From Podarcis gaigeae (lineage: Eukaryota): a stretch of DNA of 64,000 bases. This document shows, piece by piece, positions 4,931-59,725 of this stretch. The notes under the pieces were generated by a model. It had not been told where the DNA came from. It saw nothing but the letters and a program-made list of their open reading frames with translations, and searched no databases. The stretch lies in NCBI GenBank assembly GCA_964106915.2, contig OZ066922.1. One strand, given 5' to 3'. The translations under genes and the position numbers were made by a program. The first letter of the stretch is position 1. Each line of letters opens with the position of its first letter.

Positions 4931-5094
4931 NNNNNNNNNNNNNNNNNNNNNNNNNNNNNNNNNNNNNNNNNNNNNNNNNNNNNNNNNNNNNNNNNNNNNN
5001 NNNNNNNNNNNNNNNNNNNNNNNNNNNNNNNNNNNNNNNNNNNNNNNNNNNNNNNNNNNNNNNNNNNNNNNNNNNNNNNNNNNNNNNNNNNNNN
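4931..5094. other. Assembly gap (run of N)
   Basis: Ns in the sequence. Confidence 0.99.
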
Positions 5095-17684: not shown

Positions 17685-18966
17685 TGTCCCTTTCTCTAGG
17701 TTCTCTAGTGAAAGGAGTCTGAAGGTTGGTTAAACATTTTCTTCCCAGGTTTCAAAAGGTGCTAGTCCAACTGATACTTCTGTGATTACACATTTTAATG
17801 CTTTGCATTTGAAAGGCAAGATACCAAAAAACTTACTCTGAATACTTGGGTGCACACTAAAACCATCACCTAAAGTTTAAGTGATTCATTGAGAACCTTG
17901 TGTTAGATGGAGTTAAGTTGTTATGCAACTGTAGTTGTTCATTTAACTATCACCCAGCCTAAGCTGAAAACTTTCGAGATGCAAATTAGGCTCTGAAGCT
18001 TTTCCTCATCCTTGATCACTCCAGGTGGGAGGGAATGGTAGTAAACAGAGCAGCAGGGTACCAAAATTAAATTATCATCTCTTAAGGGAAGCTCTCTGAA
18101 GATCCTGCATATGTGTTTACATATATATGCACACCATCTCTTTGCAAAACACATTATAGTGGTCTCCCTGCTGTCCATGAAACGAGTGCAGGGTCACTCT
18201 GCTATAAGAGGTTAGAGAACTGCAAACCAGAGATTTCTATCTACTTCCCAACATCTGTATATGAAACATGCACAAAACCCTCTACGTGAAATGATAGCAT
18301 AGCAAATGCAGTTACTAAGATTGAAATCTGGTCAATTTTTTTATATGCAAAAGTCTTCAGATGAAACAAAAGGCAATTCCAAATAAATGCTGTGATTTCT
18401 CTAACGTTTGAAAGATGGCCCCTTCTAAGGATTTATATAAAGAAAGATTAAAATACATGGATTAAAAACATTTCACTAAGTCATTTTCTGCACATGATGC
18501 CAAATTCATAGTATCAGAAGATTACCCTTAAATATTACAGTTTTTATTTTGCAAATTAGGAAGGAATTTTTAAATTTGATGTAAGGTAAAAGAACCAGAC
18601 TTTTAAATAATGCAGTGAATTATTATGTATTCACCTGTGCCAGTGATGTGTGTTTTGCTTTATCTCCATGCTAATGATTAAAAGGCATGTAAATACCTTC
18701 AATCAAAGGAGTAAAAAAAAATATATTTTTTTTAAAAAATGGATTTCATTTTGCCAGTCTCTTTGGTCTCTTTTTAAAGCAACATAAGACTGCAATCTCA
18801 TATTCCTTTACCTGGGAGTAAACCCCATTGGACTTGCATAATAGTTCACCTGCATGGGATTACACTGCAATTGCTTTAGATTTGGGACAGACATAAAGTG
18901 AGCAACAGCAGACATTTCCAAGGCCGTTTCCAAGTGCCAAACAGACTGAGGAGTGCAATCCCTAAA

Positions 18967-19179
18967 GCGTGTTCTCATAAAAGAAAGAGCACGTGTTGCG
19001 GATGGGGCCGAACAAAACCCCATTTAGTTGCCAGGCCATTGATGGCAATGGGCCTGGAGCAGATTGGTTGATGTTGTTACTGGGGTAAATTTGATGTTGC
19101 CAAATTAGGGGTGGGATTAACGGCTATATAAACAGGGTCCACAGCTTTCTCTTTCTCTTTCGCTGTGGACATCGGATCT
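18967..19179 (+). repeat. Split direct repeat A1 (213 bp)
   Basis: GCGTGTTCTC...GGACATCGGATCT, identical by eye to 25721-25933. Confidence 0.96.
19061..19165 (+). promoter_or_regulatory. Putative Pol II promoter in A1
   Basis: ATTGG (reverse CCAAT) ~19063; GGGGTGGG GC/GT box ~19108; TATATAAA 19125-19132; pyrimidine initiator-like TCTCTTTC about 30 nt downstream. Confidence 0.65.
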
Positions 19180-19359
19180 TCTGTACCGGAGTGAAACAGC
19201 GAGAGAAAATTTGGTCGTATTAATCTCAGATTTTGCCTTTCTTTCCTTCCCACTTTTAATTTCTCCCCAAGCGATCTTGGTTTAAGTTAGTTACGAATTT
19301 TAGTATTGTTATTATTTAATTATCTTTCCTTCATATTGTCCTCACTTTTCTCCTTTCAG

Positions 19360-20290
19360 GGGGGGGGGCGATCGCCCGGTCCCGGCTGGCTACGGCCCGC
19401 TCTCGGCCGAGCCGCCGGTCCGGGCTGGGAAGGTTCTGCCCCCTGATCCGCGGCCTGCCGCTTCAGGGGCCTACCGCTGCAGTTGCTGCCGTATCCGCGC
19501 GCGGCAGCGGCGCAAAAGACCCCCCCCCATTTCGCTGCTGCGGTTCGTCTGTTACCCCCCTTTCTTTCCCCCCCCACCCCCTCTTTTGCTCACCCAGCGC
19601 CGCCCGAGGCCGGGCGTTTCCCCCTGGGCCTCGCTGCTGCCGCCGCTGTTGCGGGCGGCCTGCCGGGGGAGCGCCTTGATCGCCGGCCGTTTCCCCCTGG
19701 GCCGCGCTGCTGCCGCCGCTGTTGTGTGCGGCCTACTGGGGGGAGCGCCTTGATCGCCCGCGGCTGGGTTGGGCCCGGCCGGGCCTGCCGCGCCGCGCCG
19801 TAGGCGGTGCCGGCGGCGCGGGGATTGGCCCGCGGCCCGTTTCGGCGCGGTTGAGGCCTGGCGCGGCCTTGACCGCCTTCTCGTCGTGGGGCCTGTGGGT
19901 TCCCAGGGCTTGCGGCTGCGGCTGCTGCCGCACGCAGCCCGTTAGGGCCGCCTCGATCGCCCGCGCTCGGGTCGGATCCGGCCGGGCCTGCCGCGCCGTG
20001 GGCTACTTCCGGCGGCGCGGGGATCATCTGTGGGTGCCTTTAGGCTTGCGGCCCGGGGAGCGAATTTCACCCCTCCCCTCCCTCTCCCTTTCACCCCCCC
20101 CGTTCCCCTTTGGGGCCTTTGGGGGTGCCAGAGAGGGGCCGCGCAAGCCGTGAACCTTTTACCTGCCCCGCTGGGCCTTCTTACCCGGCGCTTGGGTGAA
20201 TTGAACCCTGGTTGCTGACCCAGCCTCAGTATTTGGGTGGTGATCCTCCATTTTAGGGGCAATTTTGGCGGGAGCGCCATCTTGCCCCTT
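19360..20290 (+). other. CpG-island-like GC-rich 5' leader of the element with internal degenerate repeats
   Basis: Very high GC and CpG; 73-bp tandem pair at 19615-19684 / 19688-19758; second pair at ~19752-19826 / ~19955-20025. Confidence 0.8.
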
Positions 20291-20637
20291 GTTTTAACAG
20301 TTAATAGAGGCCTCTGCTGGCCACCCTGGTAACTGGTGGCCTCTAGTGGCCGCTTTGGTATTGCAGTTTTTTTTTTTTTTTTTTTTGAATGTTACCTGCT
20401 TAGGTCTTGCTGTTATTTCCTGTTGCTTATACCATTGACCGGGCCTCAGAATACGTTAGTGGCGTTGGGTTATTCTGGTACCTGCTGGTTGTCTTAATTA
20501 TTTTTTAATTATCCGTTATTTTCGTATTGTTATTACCTTATTATTTTTACTATTATTTAGTTTTATTTAATCTTGACTTAATTTCGATTTGATTTTATCT
20601 CCTTTTGTTTGATTCTTTGTTTAAGCCAGCGGCAGGG

Positions 20638-22164
20638 ATGGCTCCAAAGAAGGCAACAAGGAAGTCGGCTCCTGCCCTCACTGCTAAGCGGCCCATAAAA
20701 GGCCCATCTCAGGCTCTGCGTTCTCCTCAACCTGGCCAGTCGTTACAACGCATTCGATCCATGGTCTCCAGTTTGGCTGGTGACCCAGTGGCCCTGGCAA
20801 GGGTAGAGGCCGAGATGGATGGGTGGATGCACCGCTCTTCAACCCCGTCGTCCTCATCTGCTATGATGAGTCCTGCCTTGGGCGCCTTGTCCCCGGTGGC
20901 ATCTTCTAGCGAAGATGATGGAGAGATATTGTTAGCCGGCGGCTCATTGCCTGATATTCAATCCGCACACCCTCCTGTCCTTCCTGTGTCGCAGGTTACG
21001 GTGGAGAGAGGTCGTGGCCATACCAGGGCTGGGGCCAGGAGGAGGGATCCAGCTCAGGAACGGGTTGTGCAGGGTTCACCTGCGCAGTCTTCTGTAGCGG
21101 GGGGTCTGGCGCCGGGTCATTCACGGTCAGTTTCTTTTCAGTCACGCCCAGGTGCGGTGCAGCAGGGTGAGGTATCAGAATCCTCAGTGGAGGACAGCCT
21201 CCCTCTTCCTCCGAAGACCTCTTCGGGGGGTCATCGCCGACGCAAGAAGAGCTCCAGGAGGCGTGCCAAGAGGAGACGTAGAGACACCTCGTCTTCTTCA
21301 TCAGGTGCGTCTACCCAGAGTTCTAGTAGTGACGAGGAAGCGCCCCTTAAGTTATACTGGGGTTTCGGGGAAACCTCGGGGCTCCCAAAATGGGTTTGGG
21401 AGCGGAGGGCGAATTCCCATAGGGCTAGGTATGGGGCGGTGCAAGACTGCCTCAAAGGGGCCCTGGTGCCTGACGTAAAGGTCTCCACCAACTCAGCCAG
21501 GGATATTATTCCGGGGGCTCACCTGTCTGCTAAATTGCGGTCCAGAATTTTGGATGGCCGTTATGTTGATATATTCAGCCTAGCCCCCCCGCTTGAAGGC
21601 CAGGAGCCCCTGGATAGGGGCCAGCCTGTACCGAAGAAACGGTCGTTCATACCAAAGTCGGATAGGACTTTTGAGCGATGGTTAGATAGTTTCCAGGTTT
21701 TTGCTGGAGTAGTGGCTGCAGCTTATCCCAGGAGATCCTTGCATCTCTGGGTGTATCTATCTATAGTCCGTTCTGCCTTCACAATGGCTGGAGAAATTGC
21801 TGCGCTAGCCTACGACCAGAATTTTAGGCGTAGGGCTGCTAAGATCCCCACGGCCCGCTGGGATCGGAAGGACTTAGACGTCTGGACCACTTATGTGGCC
21901 CCCCGCATTGATAAGAAGGCCCCTGATACACGGAAATTCAAGGTTGCCCCGACACGGTTAGGCCGTAAGCCGTTTTGCTGGGATTTTAATAAGGGCGCTT
22001 GCCCGCGGCAATCCTGCAAATACGCACATGTGTGCGAAAAGTGTTCAGGGAACCATTCGGCGTCCACGTGTTTGGGGGGCCGTCCCCCCTTTCGGAAAGG
22101 AGGGGGCTCTCAGCAGCCCCCAAAAGTCGCTGCCCAAGTCCCTGCCGCAGGAGCGGGAAAGTAG
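20638..22164 (+). CDS. Gag-like ORF1 of the Ngaro element (508 aa from ATG 20638)
   Basis: ATG in strong Kozak context (GGGATGG); the ORF-track start at 20605 is TTG. Ser/Arg-rich N-terminal half with the basic cluster HRRRKKSSRRRAKRRRR; DIRS-gag-like core (RYVDIFSL, FERWLDSF, AYDQNFRRR); C-terminal Cys/His fingers CWDFNKGACPRQSCKYAH and CEKCSGNHSASTC. Confidence 0.9.
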   Translation: MAPKKATRKSAPALTAKRPIKGPSQALRSPQPGQSLQRIRSMVSSLAGDPVALARVEAEMDGWMHRSSTPSSSSAMMSPALGALSPVASSSEDDGEILLAGGSLPDIQSAHPPVLPVSQVTVERGRGHTRAGARRRDPAQERVVQGSPAQSSVAGGLAPGHSRSVSFQSRPGAVQQGEVSESSVEDSLPLPPKTSSGGHRRRKKSSRRRAKRRRRDTSSSSSGASTQSSSSDEEAPLKLYWGFGETSGLPKWVWERRANSHRARYGAVQDCLKGALVPDVKVSTNSARDIIPGAHLSAKLRSRILDGRYVDIFSLAPPLEGQEPLDRGQPVPKKRSFIPKSDRTFERWLDSFQVFAGVVAAAYPRRSLHLWVYLSIVRSAFTMAGEIAALAYDQNFRRRAAKIPTARWDRKDLDVWTTYVAPRIDKKAPDTRKFKVAPTRLGRKPFCWDFNKGACPRQSCKYAHVCEKCSGNHSASTCLGGRPPFRKGGGSQQPPKVAAQVPAAGAGK

Positions 22165-23770
22165 CACACTATCCTCCTTAGCTTACACCCCGGTAAGGTT
22201 ACAACCGTTACTAGCATTGTTAGAGTCATATCCTGATACCAAATCGGCCTCTTATTTGCGCGAAGGTTTTTCTTTAGGTTTTAGAATCCCAGTAGTTTCC
22301 GCCCCAGTGGCTGGGAACCCTGCAAACCAAAAATCGATCAAGGATATGCCAGAGGTGGCGCGCAAGAAAATTGGAAAAGAATTGGCTTTGCGTCGCATGG
22401 CCGGTCCTTTTGCCGCCCCCCCTTTTCCCAATTTGCACATTTCACCTTTGGGTATAGTTCCCAAAAAAGCTCCGGGGGAATTCCGCTTAATCCATAACCT
22501 TTCTCATCCTATAGGCACGTCAGTAAATGACATGATTCCCCCGGAGCTTTGCTCGGTGAAATATGCTTCCCTTGATCACGCGATCAAGATGATTCGGAAA
22601 TTTGGGCCGGGCGCCTTACTGGCAAAATGCGACATCGAATCTGCATTTCGGCTGCTTCCAATTCATCCCGATGATTTTTGGTTGCTGGGATTTCAGTTCG
22701 AAGGTGGATTCTATTTTGATAAGGCTATGCCCATGGGCTGCTCAGTTGCCTGTGCGGCTTTTGAGTGTTTCAGTTCATTTTTGGAGTGGGCCTTGCGTGA
22801 AAAGACCGGACTGGGCGGAGTCACGCATTATCTCGATGATTTTTTGGTCGCCTCGGCAGGCAATACAGGGGACTGCGTGGCGTTATTGCAGGCCTTTGCT
22901 TCCTTAACGGAAGATCTGGGTGTCCCTTTAGCGGCTGGAAAGACCGAGGGTCCTTCTACGCAGCTGACCTATTTGGGTATCTTATTAGATACCGTGGCCC
23001 AAACCTCTAGCTTGCCGCCTGAGAAGATAATCAATTTGAGGAAGGTTATCAAGGATCTGGTGCCTTTAAAGAAGGTTACCTTGCGGCAGCTTCAGTCGTT
23101 GCTGGGCCACTTGAATTTTGCGTGCAGGGTGGTCTCCCCCGGGCGACCATTTTGCTCCCGCTTGGCTAAACTTACCTCGGGCTTACAAGCCCCGCATCAC
23201 AGGGTACGCCTTCCTAGTCAGGTGCGGGCTGACCTTGATATTTGGTTGGAGTTCCTGGAGGACTTCAATGGGGTGTCGTTGTGGCAGGACATTCTGAACC
23301 TACGCAACGACTTCCAGGTGCATTCTGACGCGGCCGGGTCCTTGGGGTTTGGATTGTTTTGGGACGGCAGGTGGTGTGCTGAGCGCTGGCCGCCCGCTTG
23401 GCAGGGGCAGGCTATTACTCGGGATCTAACATTTCTTGAGTTTTTTCCCATTGTAGTGGCAGTGCACTTGTGGGTCGAGCATTTCAGGGATCATCGCGTT
23501 TGTTTCTGGACTGATAACCAGGCGGTGGTGAAGGTACTGGCCAAGCAGTCTTCACGATCCCCTAGGGTATCTGCCCTTCTGCGGGCCTTCGTTCTGCATT
23601 GCTTGCGTTTTAATATTGTGTTCTCTGCTCGTTTTGTTCCGGGAATTTCTAATGAGATTGCCGATGCTCTGTCCCGTTTTCAGATGGAGCGATTCAGGTC
23701 CCTGGTGCCAGTGGCTCGAGACCGTCCGGAAATTTTCCCGGATCATCTCTGGAACCTTGGCAGAACTTAG
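22028..23770 (+). CDS. Reverse transcriptase / RNase H (ORF2)
   Basis: RT motifs ISPLGIVPKK, FRLIHNLS, KCDIESAFRLLP, MPMG, HYLDDF, YLGILLD; RNase H acidic residues in HSDAA, FLEFFP, WTDNQ, NEIADALSR; no frameshift or stop. Confidence 0.96.
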   Translation: MCAKSVQGTIRRPRVWGAVPPFGKEGALSSPQKSLPKSLPQERESSTLSSLAYTPVRLQPLLALLESYPDTKSASYLREGFSLGFRIPVVSAPVAGNPANQKSIKDMPEVARKKIGKELALRRMAGPFAAPPFPNLHISPLGIVPKKAPGEFRLIHNLSHPIGTSVNDMIPPELCSVKYASLDHAIKMIRKFGPGALLAKCDIESAFRLLPIHPDDFWLLGFQFEGGFYFDKAMPMGCSVACAAFECFSSFLEWALREKTGLGGVTHYLDDFLVASAGNTGDCVALLQAFASLTEDLGVPLAAGKTEGPSTQLTYLGILLDTVAQTSSLPPEKIINLRKVIKDLVPLKKVTLRQLQSLLGHLNFACRVVSPGRPFCSRLAKLTSGLQAPHHRVRLPSQVRADLDIWLEFLEDFNGVSLWQDILNLRNDFQVHSDAAGSLGFGLFWDGRWCAERWPPAWQGQAITRDLTFLEFFPIVVAVHLWVEHFRDHRVCFWTDNQAVVKVLAKQSSRSPRVSALLRAFVLHCLRFNIVFSARFVPGISNEIADALSRFQMERFRSLVPVARDRPEIFPDHLWNLGRT

Positions 23771-24654
23771 TTTTACAGGGAGTAGCTGCATCTGTTGCAC
23801 CCTCTACATTGAGGTCTTATGAAAAGGCCTGGTCGGATTTTTTATTATTTATTGGACAGTCTAGTGCGGAAGTTACCACCTCCCATTCCACCTCTCAGGT
23901 GCTCCGGTATTTGGCACATTTATTCCAGATGCGTCGGGCGGTTAGGACCCTACGACTGCACTCTGCAGCAATTTCCTTTTTTAACAGGGCATATTTTGAT
24001 AAAGATCCGTGTCGGAAATTTGTGGTCCGTAGGGCCTTGGAAGGATGGGGTCGACTCACTCCTTCCAGGCCCATCCCCAGACGCCCCATTACCTTTGAAT
24101 TGCTGGCACAGATGCGGTCTAAACTGCGGGGCATCTGTTGGTCCAAATTTGAGGCTCGGCTATTTTCTGCAGCCTTTTCATTAGCTTTCTTTGGGGCCCT
24201 GAGAGTCGGAGAGGTGGTCCTTGAGTCCAAACGGGATGGAGGTTCGAGGGGTTTACTGTTGCAGGACGTTACTGTGTCTGCAAGGGTCCTGCAGGTTAAT
24301 ATCAGGAATTCAAAGACGGACCAACTAGGCAGGGGCGCTGTGCTTACGCTCCCTGCGACTTGTGGAAATGGCCCTTGTCCGGTAAAAGACCTTACGAAGT
24401 ATTTAGCTTTGCGTCCCGGCGGTGAAGGGCCCCTGTTCATTCATGAGAATGGCCGCCCGCTAGTGCGACACCAGTTTACTAGTGTGTTGCGGAAAGCTGT
24501 GGCGGCTTGTGGCCTTCCGGCTCCTGAGTTTGCCCCTCACTCATTTAGGATTGGAGCTGCTACAACTGCCGCTCATTGGGGTTTATCAGTAAAGAGGATA
24601 AAGGACCTGGGACGGTGGAAATCGGATGCATTCAAAGTCTACGTACGGAAATAA
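23656..24654 (+). CDS. Tyrosine recombinase (ORF3), lacking an in-frame ATG upstream of the conserved N-terminus
   Basis: Catalytic R (GALRVGE), K (NSKTDQ), HxxR (HSFRIGAAT), W (LGRWKS) and Y (FKVYVR). The frame is open from 23656 (after TAA TGA), overlaps the RT end, and includes the DIRS-like N-terminal ASVAPSTLRSY. The ORF-track start at 23809 is TTG. Confidence 0.95.
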   Translation, partial: DCRCSVPFSDGAIQVPGASGSRPSGNFPGSSLEPWQNLVLQGVAASVAPSTLRSYEKAWSDFLLFIGQSSAEVTTSHSTSQVLRYLAHLFQMRRAVRTLRLHSAAISFFNRAYFDKDPCRKFVVRRALEGWGRLTPSRPIPRRPITFELLAQMRSKLRGICWSKFEARLFSAAFSLAFFGALRVGEVVLESKRDGGSRGLLLQDVTVSARVLQVNIRNSKTDQLGRGAVLTLPATCGNGPCPVKDLTKYLALRPGGEGPLFIHENGRPLVRHQFTSVLRKAVAACGLPAPEFAPHSFRIGAATTAAHWGLSVKRIKDLGRWKSDAFKVYVRK

Positions 24655-25268
24655 TGTGTTGTCTGTACTTACATATGTGTGTTTTAACCCTAGGTCGGGC
24701 TGCTATCCGTATCTGGATAGTAGGGCACAGTATTGTGCATTGGGCTGCGGACAGAGCTCGCCAGTCTGGACTGGGTGATGGCCTGGGATTCCCGCAGCAC
24801 GTACAGGTGTCCTGGATCTGCAGAAGGGGGATGCTGTGGTGGGAATTCTTACCTCTCATGCGAAGGCGTGTCCGCCAGTTTGGCCCTCCTTCGGCGATCG
24901 TAGTGCAGCTCGGGGAGAATGATTTGGTTTCATCTTCCTGCTTCGGGCTGCGTGCTGCTATGTTACAGGACCTTCGGGAGCTGGCGGCACTGGTGCCGAC
25001 AGCTAAGTTATTTTGGTCACAGTTACTTCAACGCCGCATCTGGCGGGGTAGTCCTTGCCCAGCTGCCACCGAACGTATGAGGAAGCGGATTAATTCTGCG
25101 GCAAGCAAGCTGGTGGTGAATTTGGGCGGGTGTGTGGTCCCTCATCCTCTTATTTCTTTTAAGGCGGTTGAATTTTACAGGGATGACGGGGTTCATCTCT
25201 CCCCAGTTGGGAATGATGTGTGGTTGGATGCTTTGGTGTCCAGGTTGAGGGTGTGGTTTGAATTGTGA
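24654..25268 (+). CDS. SGNH/GDSL-family hydrolase (ORF4)
   Basis: Block I WIVGHS, block II RRGM, block III QLGEND, block V DGVHLS; the first ATG (24654) overlaps the YR stop (TAATG). Confidence 0.88.
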   Translation: MCCLYLHMCVLTLGRAAIRIWIVGHSIVHWAADRARQSGLGDGLGFPQHVQVSWICRRGMLWWEFLPLMRRRVRQFGPPSAIVVQLGENDLVSSSCFGLRAAMLQDLRELAALVPTAKLFWSQLLQRRIWRGSPCPAATERMRKRINSAASKLVVNLGGCVVPHPLISFKAVEFYRDDGVHLSPVGNDVWLDALVSRLRVWFEL

Positions 25269-25296
25269 GTGGTTGGCGGCGAGCGTAAGGGCTCGA

Positions 25297-25717
25297 TTGG
25301 CGGTTAGGCATTGGTTAAAATTGGTTGGTGGAGGGGTATGGATTGGCTGTGCCTGCCCCTCCAATGCTGCTGCTGACGGGTATTCCGTTAAAGGAATTCT
25401 GAAGCTTACCATCCCCTTCGTCCAAACCCTGACGGCAGGGTGCGGGCCGCGTAAGCTTCAAGGAACATGCGCGGAGTAGCTGAGGGCCTGTATCGCAGCT
25501 CCAGCTGACTCTGACCTTGTTCCTCCGGGACTGACTAAGGAGTCAGTGCTGTCCCCCAAGGCGGGGGGAGACAGCTAGTCATAACCAATGCCTAAGCAAC
25601 CACTCTCAATTTGTATGAAAATAAAGTTGTGGCCAAAAATTATGCCAAAAACCTTAAACAAAAATTATGTGTGATGTTTGAGTTATTGGGGAGGGGTTTT
25701 GGGGGACCTCAGCACGC
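25297..25717 (+). repeat. Split direct repeat B1 (421 bp)
   Basis: TTGGCGGTTAGG...CAGCACGC, identical by eye to 26098-26518. Confidence 0.96.
25620..25685 (+). terminator. Poly(A) signal in B1 (AATAAA plus downstream GU-rich element); duplicated in B2 at 26421
   Basis: AATAAA at 25620-25625 followed ~45 nt later by TGTGTGATGTTTGAGTT. Confidence 0.65.
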
Positions 25718-25720
25718 AAA

Positions 25721-25933
25721 GCGTGTTCTCATAAAAGAAAGAGCACGTGTTGCGGATGGGGCCGAACAAAACCCCATTTAGTTGCCAGGCCATTGATGGC
25801 AATGGGCCTGGAGCAGATTGGTTGATGTTGTTACTGGGGTAAATTTGATGTTGCCAAATTAGGGGTGGGATTAACGGCTATATAAACAGGGTCCACAGCT
25901 TTCTCTTTCTCTTTCGCTGTGGACATCGGATCT
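25721..25933 (+). repeat. Split direct repeat A2 (213 bp)
   Basis: Copy of A1 including TATATAAA at 25879-25886. Confidence 0.96.
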
Positions 25934-26097
25934 CCCGCCCGCCCTCCCTTGTCTGGGCTTTCGCTTGACCTTGCTTTGCCTGTCATGGGGTCGCTCGCAT
26001 TGTTGCGTGGGCCCAGTAGGAATTTTCCCAATTGGCTGATTAGTGCGTGCCTTTTGGGTTTTGCCTACTGCTTAGCAAATCGTCACAACTTGTAAGG

Positions 26098-26518
26098 TTG
26101 GCGGTTAGGCATTGGTTAAAATTGGTTGGTGGAGGGGTATGGATTGGCTGTGCCTGCCCCTCCAATGCTGCTGCTGACGGGTATTCCGTTAAAGGAATTC
26201 TGAAGCTTACCATCCCCTTCGTCCAAACCCTGACGGCAGGGTGCGGGCCGCGTAAGCTTCAAGGAACATGCGCGGAGTAGCTGAGGGCCTGTATCGCAGC
26301 TCCAGCTGACTCTGACCTTGTTCCTCCGGGACTGACTAAGGAGTCAGTGCTGTCCCCCAAGGCGGGGGGAGACAGCTAGTCATAACCAATGCCTAAGCAA
26401 CCACTCTCAATTTGTATGAAAATAAAGTTGTGGCCAAAAATTATGCCAAAAACCTTAAACAAAAATTATGTGTGATGTTTGAGTTATTGGGGAGGGGTTT
26501 TGGGGGACCTCAGCACGC
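26098..26518 (+). repeat. Split direct repeat B2 (421 bp)
   Basis: Copy of B1; marks the element's 3' end and is followed by AAA. Confidence 0.96.
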
Positions 26519-27363
26519 AAAATAAAACAGAAGTTTATGTAGATAATTATTCAACACCCAGCCTTGGCCCTGTGAATAAAAAACACTTGGGGCTTAAAAT
26601 TAATTTGGCCAGGCACACAGTCCATTTAGTTAAAATAATTACTCATTCAGATTAATTGCACACCTGATTCTAAAATAAACCTCACAGCTTAAAACATTAT
26701 GCAAAGGCTAGGATGTTAAGACACTGGTGGTAAGTACAATCAGAAAGATACAATTATTTGTTCACCATAGACTTGATAGGAATGCTTATAGCAACTATGC
26801 CTGGCCTCTAGGGGTTTTGGAAATCAGATGCCATTCATTGCGGGAGAGAGAAACTCTACTCCTAGTCTGGCAATCAGTGAAATAAAAGGCTGGAGCTGGA
26901 GGGATGGGTGGGAAGGAGATACACAGAAGTATGGCATTCCAAGAGTATGGCAGGATTTCAAATCTTTACTTGATCCTGAGATTTCTCTTGAAGAAGGTTG
27001 TGTGCTTGATGATGCCCTCGTGTACCCCTATACATTCCCCTCCTCATGGGAAGGGAGAACTCAGTACAGACACCCCATTTCCCAATCCCACAGATTCTTA
27101 ATGTTCATATTTATTCCTCTTCTGGACATCTGGGCTGGGATGGCTCTGGTGTTGTTGTTTTTGGCAAAGTGAATTAACTGTGCACTGTCCCCTCAAGGGC
27201 ACTTAACAGTCTTGCTGGTGAGTTCTACATGACCTTGTCTGATAACCCTGACAGTTACCAGCACATGTATGGAAACTAAATCTAGTAGTTGAGGTTCAAC
27301 ACACAAGCTTGGGAAGGAATAGTTTATACGAATTGATTAAGCACTATCTTTAACTTAGAATGT

Positions 27364-27714
27364 GGGGCACGGGTGGTGCTGTGGGTTAAACCACAGAGCC
27401 TAGGACTTGCTGATCAGAAGGTCGGCGGTTTGAATCCCCACAACAGGGTGAGCTCCCGTAGCTCGGTCCCTGGTCCTTCCAACCTAGCAGTTCGAAAGCA
27501 CATCAAAGTGCAAGTAGATAAATAGGTACTGCTCCAGCGGGAAGGTAAACAGCGTTTTCATGTGCTGCTCTGGTTTGCCAGAAGCGGCTTAGTCATGCTG
27601 GCCACATGACCCAGAAGCTGTAAGCCGACTCCCTCGGCCAATAAAGGGAGATGAGCACCGCAACCCCAGAGTCGGTCACGACTGAACCTAATGGTCAGGG
27701 GTCCCTTTACCTTT
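27364..27714 (+). mobile_element. Sauria SINE, full length
   Basis: GGGTGGTGCTGTGGGTTAAACCACAGAGCCTAGG head, GCAGTTCGAAAGCAC...AAATAGGTAC body, CCTTTACCTTT tail; imperfect TSD TTTAACTTAGAATG / TTTAACTTATAATG. Confidence 0.88.
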
Positions 27715-52774: not shown

Positions 52775-53040
52775 CCCTGGACAGTTAAGTCCATTCAAAT
52801 TTGACTATCGGATGCAGCGTTTATCTCTGCTTTTAGGCTGAGGGAACAGGGGTTTGTCTGCAGACAGTTTTTCTGGATCATGTGGACAGCATGACTTTTC
52901 CGGGTCTTTCTGGCACACGGGATATTATGATGAGTGCCAGAGTGCACAGAAACGCTGTTTACCTTCCCGCTGCAGCAGTATCTATTTATCTACTTGCACT
53001 GGTGGGCTTTCGAACAGCTAGGTTGGCAGCAGCTGGGACA
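52775..53040 (-). mobile_element. Degenerate Sauria SINE
   Basis: Reverse complement of the Sauria body (GTTTACCTTCCCGCTG, TATTTATCTACTTGCAC, TTCGAACAGCTAGGTTGGC). Confidence 0.75.
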
Positions 53041-59050: not shown

Positions 59051-59398
59051 TAAACAAACAATGCCTTTAAAAAGTAAGAGCAGTGGCACAAAAGTCTTCG
59101 CTGTGTATTATTCCATGTACCCAGGCCCAGATTCAACAAACCACGCATGCTAGTGGAAGCCCTCCCACTAGTACAAACGGGCTTCACCCTTCCTCTTGAT
59201 GTGCAGTCCCTACATCTCCCCCTAATTCACTCTTGAGGTTCAGGAGAACCCCCCCCCCCAGAACAGCGCATGGGAGAAGAAGAGCCTCTGGCAAGCGGAA
59301 ATGTTTGTTCTGATGGAATGATCAGTAGAACACAACAGTGAATTACTTCTCATGGTTGCTTTCATGTACTAAGATTACTTTTGAGTCTTTGAGGTCTG

Positions 59399-59725
59399 CT
59401 TAGGGCTTGCCGATCGGAAGGTTGGTGGTTCGAATCCCCGCAACGGGGTGAGCTCCCATTGCTCGGTCCCTGCTCATGTCAACTTAGCAGTTCGAAAGCA
59501 CGTCAAAGTGCAAGTAGATAAATAGGAACCACTCCAGTGAGAAGGTAAACGGCGTTTCTGTGTGCTGTTCTGGTTTGCCAGAAGGGGTTAGTCATGCTGG
59601 CCACATGACCCGGAACCTGTCTGCGGACAAACGCCAGCTCCCTTGGCCAGTAAAGCGAGATGAGTGCTGCAACCCCAGAGTGGTCCACGACTGGACCTAA
59701 TGGTCAGGGGTTCCTTTACCTTTAC
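59399..59725 (+). mobile_element. Sauria SINE, 5'-truncated
   Basis: Collinear with 27398-27714; ends CCTTTACCTTTAC. Confidence 0.85.

Follow-up and report, generated by a model that had tools for sequence, protein, structure and literature searches.

Organization of the Ngaro Element

The analyzed sequence, a 64,000-nucleotide (nt) stretch of contig OZ066922.1 from the Podarcis gaigeae assembly GCA_964106915.2 (hereafter, the window), carries at positions 18964–26521 of the plus strand a complete Ngaro element. This element is an intact, recently inserted tyrosine recombinase (YR) retrotransposon of the DIRS order. All features described below lie on the plus strand, and all coordinates are those of the window unless another locus is named. 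The split direct repeats follow the order A1 ... B1 A2 B2; since no differences separate the two copies of A (216 nt) or those of B (424 nt), each pair being 100% identical, and every frame is open, the copy is considered to be very young. An earlier note on this DNA had proposed that a common exon encoding the N-terminal part of Gag is spliced in frame to each of three downstream enzymes, with the unspliced RNA serving for full-length Gag.

The full gag open reading frame (ORF; 20638–22164, with the ATG at 20638 and the stop at 22162–22164) encodes 508 amino acids (aa), including a C-terminal CCCH zinc-finger-like part (a weak match), and has full-length homologs in proteins P0003 and P0004. 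The frame encoding reverse transcriptase (RT) together with RNase H (22182–23770) is shifted by +1 relative to gag; the first ATG of this ORF is located at 22028, and its stop at 23768–23770. According to the Pfam matches of the window proteins, the RT ORF contains RVT_1 (E = 2e-12); the ADALSR motif of the RNase H end is also present, and hundreds of RT homologs of the Ngaro type were found. The YR ORF, in the -1 frame relative to RT and open at 23656–24654 (exon 23684–24654), matched Phage_integrase (E = 1.6e-6) and Phage_int_SAM_4, a tyrosine recombinase thus replacing the DDE integrase. The ORF that follows YR encodes an SGNH hydrolase (exon 24694–25268) with weak matches to both Lipase_GDSL and Lipase_GDSL_2, and an exhaustive profile search with protein P0001 retrieved 772 SGNH relatives at E ≤ 1e-10. 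No Pfam match to a methyltransferase domain was obtained among the ORFs of the element.

Ngaro elements with an SGNH hydrolase ORF were reportedly described by Goodwin and Poulter in 2004. The Xenopus elements DIRS-53_XT and DIRS-54_XT likewise have four overlapping ORFs (gag-like, RT/RNase H, YR, and SGNH) and A1...B1-A2-B2 split direct repeats, and the function of their hydrolase is unproven (Gazolla et al., 2022; PMC9210276).

Candidate Splice Sites in the Window

All splice-site motifs and positions listed in the earlier note were recovered exactly, and its phase arithmetic was right. The shared exon 1 (20638–21304) comprises gag codons 1–222 and the first base of codon 223, and its product is 69% identical to residues 1–222 of P0001. 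As had been claimed, it ends after a basic run, stopping seven codons past HRRRKKSSRRRAKRRRR. The 5' splice site CAG|GTGCGT (the bar marks the cut) occupies 21302–21310, with the cut after 21304. This donor and two alternative ones proposed at 21166 and 21151 are all in phase 1, each falling on codon position 1 of gag. The acceptors are also in phase 1: in the RT, YR, and SGNH frames, the G at 22181, 23683, and 24693, respectively, takes the first position of a codon.

The YR 3' splice region (23646–23683) consists of the branch-like TTCTAAT at 23646–23652 and a pyrimidine tract ending in ...cccgttttcag|, with the cut after 23683, and the acceptor sits within the conserved RNase H-end motif ADALSRFQ|MERFR. 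The SGNH 3' splice region ...tgtgttttaaccctag| (24655–24693) lies in the short spacer past the YR stop and ends in ...ttaaccctag|, with the cut after 24693. The analysis also bore out the claim that YR has no ATG ahead of its conserved N-terminus: the frame opens at 23656, only 28 nt upstream of its own acceptor, and the next ATG is located well inside the SAM-like domain.

The donors were scored over 20638–25268 with a rough 5' splice-site matrix, and the donor at 21304 ranked first among 283 GT sites, with 21166 third and 21151 fifth. Acceptors were filtered crudely, the requirements being YAG, no fewer than 9 of 12 pyrimidines, and no AG in the 12 bases preceding YAG; 19 of the 281 AGs passed, all three proposed acceptors included. 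The splice sites therefore exceed chance expectation; the site evidence alone is suggestive, not decisive. The alternative donors 21166 and 21151 were taken as chance occurrences, because despite their high scores they are used in none of the models seen; the P0001 protein implies that site 21166 is altered in the P. muralis locus L001 (QQGD vs. QQGE in the window).

Gene Models of Related Elements

In the search with Gag, only residues 1–222 (hereafter, Gag-N) were scored, and target proteins of 280–889 aa were admitted; the window exons were compared with the model exons one at a time. NCBI models of Podarcis muralis with a length of 412–414 aa (P0001, P0002, P0007, P0015, P0018, and P0264) join Gag-N to SGNH at the junction equivalent to 21304 to 24694. 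Their sequence runs through Gag-N to ...DTSSSSSG and then passes directly into RAAIRIWIVGHS... and the SGNH domain. The product expected from the same junction in the window, built of 667 + 575 nt, would have 413 aa, exactly as in the P. muralis models. The window SGNH exon matched exon 2 of P0001 (413 aa) at 89% over 190 aa, without gaps and collinearly from residue 1. These P. muralis models stem from two annotation releases, and the SGNH junction was found again in P. lilfordi (P0268 and P0322), which was annotated by another, non-NCBI pipeline.

The second junction was present in the P. muralis models P0044 (499 aa) and P0265 (544 aa), where Gag-N is joined to DGVVQVPG... at the position of window 23684. 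The YR product predicted for the window, with exon 1, has 545 aa, and the window YR exon matched exon 2 of P0265 at 65% over 321 aa, collinearly from the first residue. Models joining Gag-N to YR were also observed in other lacertid families and in a gecko. In Zootoca vivipara, a single locus (LOC118082278) is annotated with both products, namely X1 with 533 aa (Gag-N to YR) and X2 with 397 aa (Gag-N to SGNH), two isoforms whose exon 1 is identical; the scheme of the earlier note is thus present in the annotation of one locus.

Models with a long N-terminal extension before SGNH or YR were found in Eublepharis, Paroedura, Hemicordylus, Elgaria, Rhineura, Bombina, Ranitomeya, Rhinatrema, and Protopterus. 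The profile search with P0001 and cluster look-ups showed N-terminally extended SGNH models, many of them named as isoforms, in geckos, a cordylid, an anguid, an amphisbaenian, frogs, a caecilian, and a lungfish. We read these as probable fusions of the same kind, in most cases from the extension. At the amphibian loci considered (P0094, P0338, and P0108), the gene spans seen were 4.65 kb, coding for 522 aa, and 4.96 kb, coding for 377 aa, with an RVT_1 gene inside the intron of the latter.

Exon Borders and Their Conservation

The exons of the protein models were placed on the DNA of six loci by prefix and suffix matches, with no joining. SGNH is the target in two P. muralis loci, L001 (donor CAG|GTGCGT, acceptor ...aaccctag|) and L004 (CAG|GTACTT, ...taccctag|), and YR is the target in L003 of P. 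muralis (CAG|GTACGT, ...cgttttcag|), L005 of Zootoca (CAG|GTACTT, ...cgtttccag|), and L006 of the gecko (AGG|GTAAGT, ...cgccagcag|). In L002 of Zootoca (CAG|GTTCGT, ...ccttctag|), the target is RT. All six loci have GT..AG borders, with introns of 2.3–3.4 kb that contain the rest of gag and RT, plus YR in the SGNH models. L001 and the window share 87% identity over 6.1 kb, and the gene span of L001, 4,631 nt, equals that of 20638–25268.

The conservation of the sites was followed in eight loci, namely the window and seven others, which represent about five families and include the gecko. A phase-1 AG|GT donor after the basic run of Gag was present in all eight (CAG|GT in seven and AGG|GTAAGT in gecko L006). 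The YR acceptor YnCAG|ATGGA, placed inside ADALSR(F/Q)Q|ME with its G at YR codon position 1, was likewise found in 8/8 loci and is the acceptor used by models P0044, P0028, and P0112. The SGNH acceptor, pyrimidine-rich and in phase 1, precedes the (I/V)W(I/L)xGHS block by a few codons in each of the seven loci that have this block. Thus, both the position and the phase of the YR and SGNH acceptors are kept across the related families. The loci L002 and L008 were annotated for RT only, and so were not picked for their YR or SGNH junctions; the sites are kept there too. In addition, the SGNH acceptor of the gecko, predicted from the DNA of L006, was later found as the junction of Eublepharis P0401, which is annotated at several loci.

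These loci also bear on whether SGNH could be translated from a start of its own. The YR stop of the window and of L004 is overlapped, as TAATG, by an ATG that is in frame with SGNH (24655 in the window), and ribosomes could use this ATG by termination–reinitiation. However, L005, L006, and L008, which represent three families, contain no SGNH ATG from the upstream stop to the GHS block, and in L001 a 1-nt indel in the YR–SGNH spacer shifts the TAATG start of the window out of the SGNH frame; the same indel indicates that the spacer is not coding. This route would, moreover, still need ribosomes to arrive at the fourth ORF. Because the ATG is absent from three loci and out of frame in a fourth, an own start for SGNH is disfavored, and we regard it as very improbable.

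For YR, the competing explanation is -1 programmed ribosomal frameshifting within the RT/YR overlap, which would yield an RT–YR polyprotein and make splicing unnecessary. Section 3.4 of PMC13003380 quotes the published proposal, by which the YR ORF of Ngaro overlaps that of RT in the -1 frame and ribosomes probably reach it by frameshifting (Poulter and Butler, 2015). The window agrees with this arrangement, since its YR frame is -1 relative to RT over a 115-nt overlap (23656–23770) containing an in-frame X XXY YYZ heptamer, T TTC CCG, at 23734, which is kept in L001, L003, and L004. However, this heptamer simply encodes Phe-Pro, and a CCC repeat in the A site makes a poor shifter. It is confined to the window's own family and missing in L005, L006, and L008, whereas the YR acceptor is found in all eight loci; across the compared families, no shared slippery heptamer in the zero frame of the RT/YR overlap was detected. 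Nor was a stable stimulatory structure found in the 90 nt downstream of the heptamer, where the minimum free energy, calculated without pseudoknots, was no better than in shuffled sequences (-20.6 kcal/mol vs. a shuffle mean of -21.7 kcal/mol; z = +0.32). Frameshifting cannot account for SGNH, which is located after the YR stop, and models joining Gag-N to YR exist, as does the joined contig described below. Overall, frameshifting is an unlikely sole route to YR.

Joined Contig and Sequencing-Run Data

Among the assembled sequencing runs, the Logan contig L009 (SRR6291285_43862; 1,677 nt) represents an intronless joined form from a related family, encoding 394 aa. It begins with a Gag-N part related to gecko Gag-N (E = 3e-12), which runs straight into ATGGAGCGATTCAGG, identical to the 15 nt past the YR acceptor of the window; a short stretch and then SGNH follow. 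The ADALSR-coding sequence is absent upstream of ATGGAGCGATTCAGG. A blastn comparison of L009 with the loci gave no match, the relation being seen at the protein level only. Most simply, L009 would be a trace of spliced RNA, whether the run is RNA or DNA.

L009 and the frog models P0400 and P0383 are Gag-N to SGNH forms in which a short middle exon begins at the YR acceptor. This structure is suggestive of a second donor, either in the RT/YR overlap or early in YR, and hence of doubly spliced RNAs.

Another contig, L007 (Logan ERR14127400_309573; protein P0021), was rejected as a transcript. In it, the YR end and the SGNH start from one Ngaro family are linked, at approximately window 23766, to YR sequence of the window family; it is an uninformative chimera of two Ngaro families, produced by nested insertion, recombination, or assembly. 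A search of sequencing runs for the stretch found no RNA run containing it. Two runs that do cover the element (X1 and X2) have contigs totaling ~1.3–1.4 Gb and a depth of ~120–145 that is similar along the leader, Gag, and YR; because of these contig totals and the even depth, they were taken as genomic DNA. The four joints in these DNA-like runs were all non-GT..AG and have no bearing on RNA.

Several points weigh against splicing of the Gag-N exon to YR and SGNH. Apart from L009, which may come from either an RNA or a DNA run, the junction evidence consists of computed gene models whose RNA support is not visible. Splicing of the window copy itself is inferred from its relatives and its sites. 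The splice-site scores came from a rough matrix based on textbook frequencies, not from MaxEntScan. Finally, given the -1 overlap with the in-frame T TTC CCG in the window family, frameshifting could coexist with splicing.

The first of these points raises the question of whether the junctions are gene-prediction artifacts, in which strong-looking GT and AG sites and open frames were chained by software with no splicing in vivo. Every junction model is computed, and RNA reads played no part in the junction evidence for the window copy. Moreover, Gnomon (NCBI gene prediction) yields small Gag–RT introns that are mutually inconsistent and odd YR–SGNH chimeras (P0062 and P0105), and since these joins disagree, some of the models are artifacts. 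However, the same YR and SGNH junctions occur in two P. muralis releases, in the non-NCBI pipeline of P. lilfordi, in about five diverged families, and in more than eight species, and single loci are annotated with alternative isoforms. The position, the phase, and the missing ATGs also hold at loci that were not selected for them, and L009 is intronless. An artifact of prediction is thus a rather improbable origin of these junctions. The scheme of the earlier note was partly supported: its YR and SGNH parts stand on the models, the borders on DNA, the unselected loci, and the joined contig, and its RT part is a candidate only.

Expression of the Reverse Transcriptase

The RT acceptor proposed in the earlier note, ctatcctccttag| (22169–22181), is a phase-1 candidate ending in ...tcctccttag|. 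The site is not conserved across families: only the window and its close relatives L001 and L004 keep it, L002, L005, and L006 lack it, and no model uses it. The sole models joining Gag-N to RT were two of Zootoca (P0144 and P0266; 775 aa), whose acceptor lies 33 nt (11 codons) downstream of the proposed one. In the window, the homologous site is a second candidate acceptor, ...ccgttactag| (22203–22214), with TACTAG| cut at 22214 in phase 1 and a weak pyrimidine tract; it is absent from L001 and L004. The other models fuse full-length Gag to RT in ways that differ between copies.

An alternative is that RT is not made from the Gag-N exon at all, being expressed either as a long Gag–RT fusion, by way of a short intron or of a +1 shift where the two frames overlap, or from the internal ATG (22028). 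The overlap between the RT frame and the end of gag exceeds 130 nt, and at L008 (3740–3935), a P. muralis locus of another Ngaro family, model P0149 removes a 181-nt GT..AG intron containing the Gag zinc finger and stop and so joins Gag residue 417 to RT. The lack of the proposed acceptor across families and the RT-only models, which begin at internal Met residues, point in the same direction. However, P0144 and P0266 do join Gag-N to RT, and the RT-only models may be merely the longest ORF of unspliced RNA. The phase-1 site C|GTAAGC at 21964 of the window could act with acceptor 22181 in the manner of the L008 intron, but it scores poorly, ranking only 37th of the 283 GT sites. We therefore consider the chances of an RT route outside the Gag-N exon to be about even.

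Another strong donor-like sequence, CCG|GTAAGG, was observed at 22192, with acceptor 22181 lying 11 nt upstream and the second candidate acceptor 22 nt downstream. It probably arises from the conserved TPVRL codons as a by-product but would interfere with exon definition there.

Proposed Expression Scheme and Its Relation to Known Systems

We propose that this intact Ngaro element probably expresses YR and SGNH by alternative splicing of the Gag-N exon to the two acceptors, with unspliced RNA providing Gag. The analysis shows the sites with their phases, how far they are conserved, and that gene models of relatives use them, and this supports the interpretation strongly for both enzymes. According to the scheme, the full-length transcript would serve both as genomic RNA and as gag mRNA. 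A strong 5' splice site in gag codon 223 (cut after 21304), just past a basic run resembling a nuclear localization signal, would be joined alternatively to 23683|23684 or to 24693|24694. Since all of these sites are in phase 1, the Gag AUG and residues 1–222 would be placed in frame ahead of either the recombinase (~545 aa) or the SGNH hydrolase (413 aa), forming a fusion. RT/RNase H may share donor 21304, with acceptor 22181 or 22214.

Across the families, YR and SGNH are without a usable start codon of their own; splicing would therefore solve both the translation of the third and fourth ORFs and the ratio of Gag to enzymes. Both enzymes would carry the same N-terminal module, which may serve in nuclear import, nucleic-acid binding, or co-assembly with Gag. 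To our knowledge, the expression of downstream ORFs in YR retrotransposons has never been shown, and we know of no explanation at all for that of the SGNH ORF. A shared Gag-N exon would explain the translation of ORFs that lack start codons, the setting of the dosage of Gag versus the enzymes, and the location of a basic module just ahead of a conserved Gly (GGT) codon in the otherwise fast-evolving Gag. The scheme predicts Gag-N-tagged enzymes and is testable with existing RNA-seq. For annotators, it means that hundreds of reptile and amphibian models named "uncharacterized protein" or "xerD homolog" could be read as retrotransposon isoforms.

We read the arrangement as a likely case of alternative subgenomic splicing of the retroviral type, in which one 5' splice site is combined with alternative in-frame 3' sites. 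A single donor with alternative in-frame acceptors was found both in the sites, phases, and open frames of the window and in the models of relatives. In retroviruses, for example in the env gene of avian leukosis/sarcoma virus, unspliced RNA gives Gag, and the gag AUG with the first codons is spliced onto a downstream gene. The element resembles that virus in having a donor just inside gag and an in-frame fusion of the gag start to a downstream gene. The virus differs in using 6 gag codons and one main acceptor, whereas 222 codons including a basic module, at least two enzymes, and a tyrosine recombinase are involved here. Foamy viruses have a spliced pol mRNA that produces Pol with no Gag part, and copia and plant Ty1/copia elements have a spliced gag RNA. 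In the foamy viruses and these elements, as proposed here, the balance of Gag and enzymes is set by splicing and not by frameshifting. However, foamy Pol contains no Gag part, unlike the Gag-N fusions, and in copia, splicing removes pol for the production of more Gag, which is the reverse arrangement.

Published descriptions of Ngaro have the ORFs translated separately or by frameshift, with splicing unmentioned, and thus differ from this scheme. Compared with the -1 model quoted in section 3.4 of PMC13003380 (Poulter and Butler, 2015), the window has the same -1 RT/YR overlap, while the overlap holds a conserved splice acceptor, and neither a conserved slippery site nor a downstream fold was found. 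The literature searched on Ngaro and DIRS elements yielded no paper on their splicing, and the earlier note knew of no description of the scheme either. The element is thus of a known kind, and its expression scheme is, as far as found, undescribed and latent in public annotations.

A broader reading is that vertebrate Ngaro elements, from lungfish and amphibians to squamates, have splicing from a donor within gag as their ancestral and general expression strategy, in place of the frameshifting assumed so far. All of the enzymes would then be fused to a Gag N-terminal module carrying them into the nucleus or the particle, and the spliced RNAs, having both repeat blocks, would be copyable. We put this forward tentatively, as a possibility slightly short of even. 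If it is true, copied spliced RNAs keeping both terminal repeat blocks would seed non-autonomous elements with the hydrolase only.

Terminal Repeats, Leader, and Flanking Sequence

The A1 split direct repeat (18964–19179) is 100% identical to A2 (25718–25933) and has a TATA-like box near 19122–19132; it is probably the promoter and the start of the transcript. A long 5' leader of 1.46 kb (19180–20637) follows, with an AT-rich part, a GC-rich part with internal repeats (19360–20150), and a T run at ~20367–20387. The GC-rich block is ~800 nt long and contains direct repeats of 61–77 nt at 19609/19682 and of ~80 nt at 19746/19949. Since the leader, this block included, is partly shared with the P. 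muralis copy L001, the block belongs to the element, perhaps as a promoter or regulatory region resembling a CpG island.

The 3' repeat block (25297–26521) consists of B1 (25297–25720), A2, a 164-nt spacer, and B2 (26098–26521), with AATAAA at 25621–25626 in B1 and at 26422–26427 in B2. The spacer (25934–26097) is unique and differs from the sequence after A1, so that the repeat layout is A1 ... B1-A2-spacer-B2 as compared with the textbook B1-A2-B2. Outside the element and unrelated to it, a pair of ~320-nt repeats with 84% identity was observed at 27398–27714 and 59398–59723, and a piece of this pair also matches 52937–53039 in reverse. A run of 164 N is located at 4931–5094.

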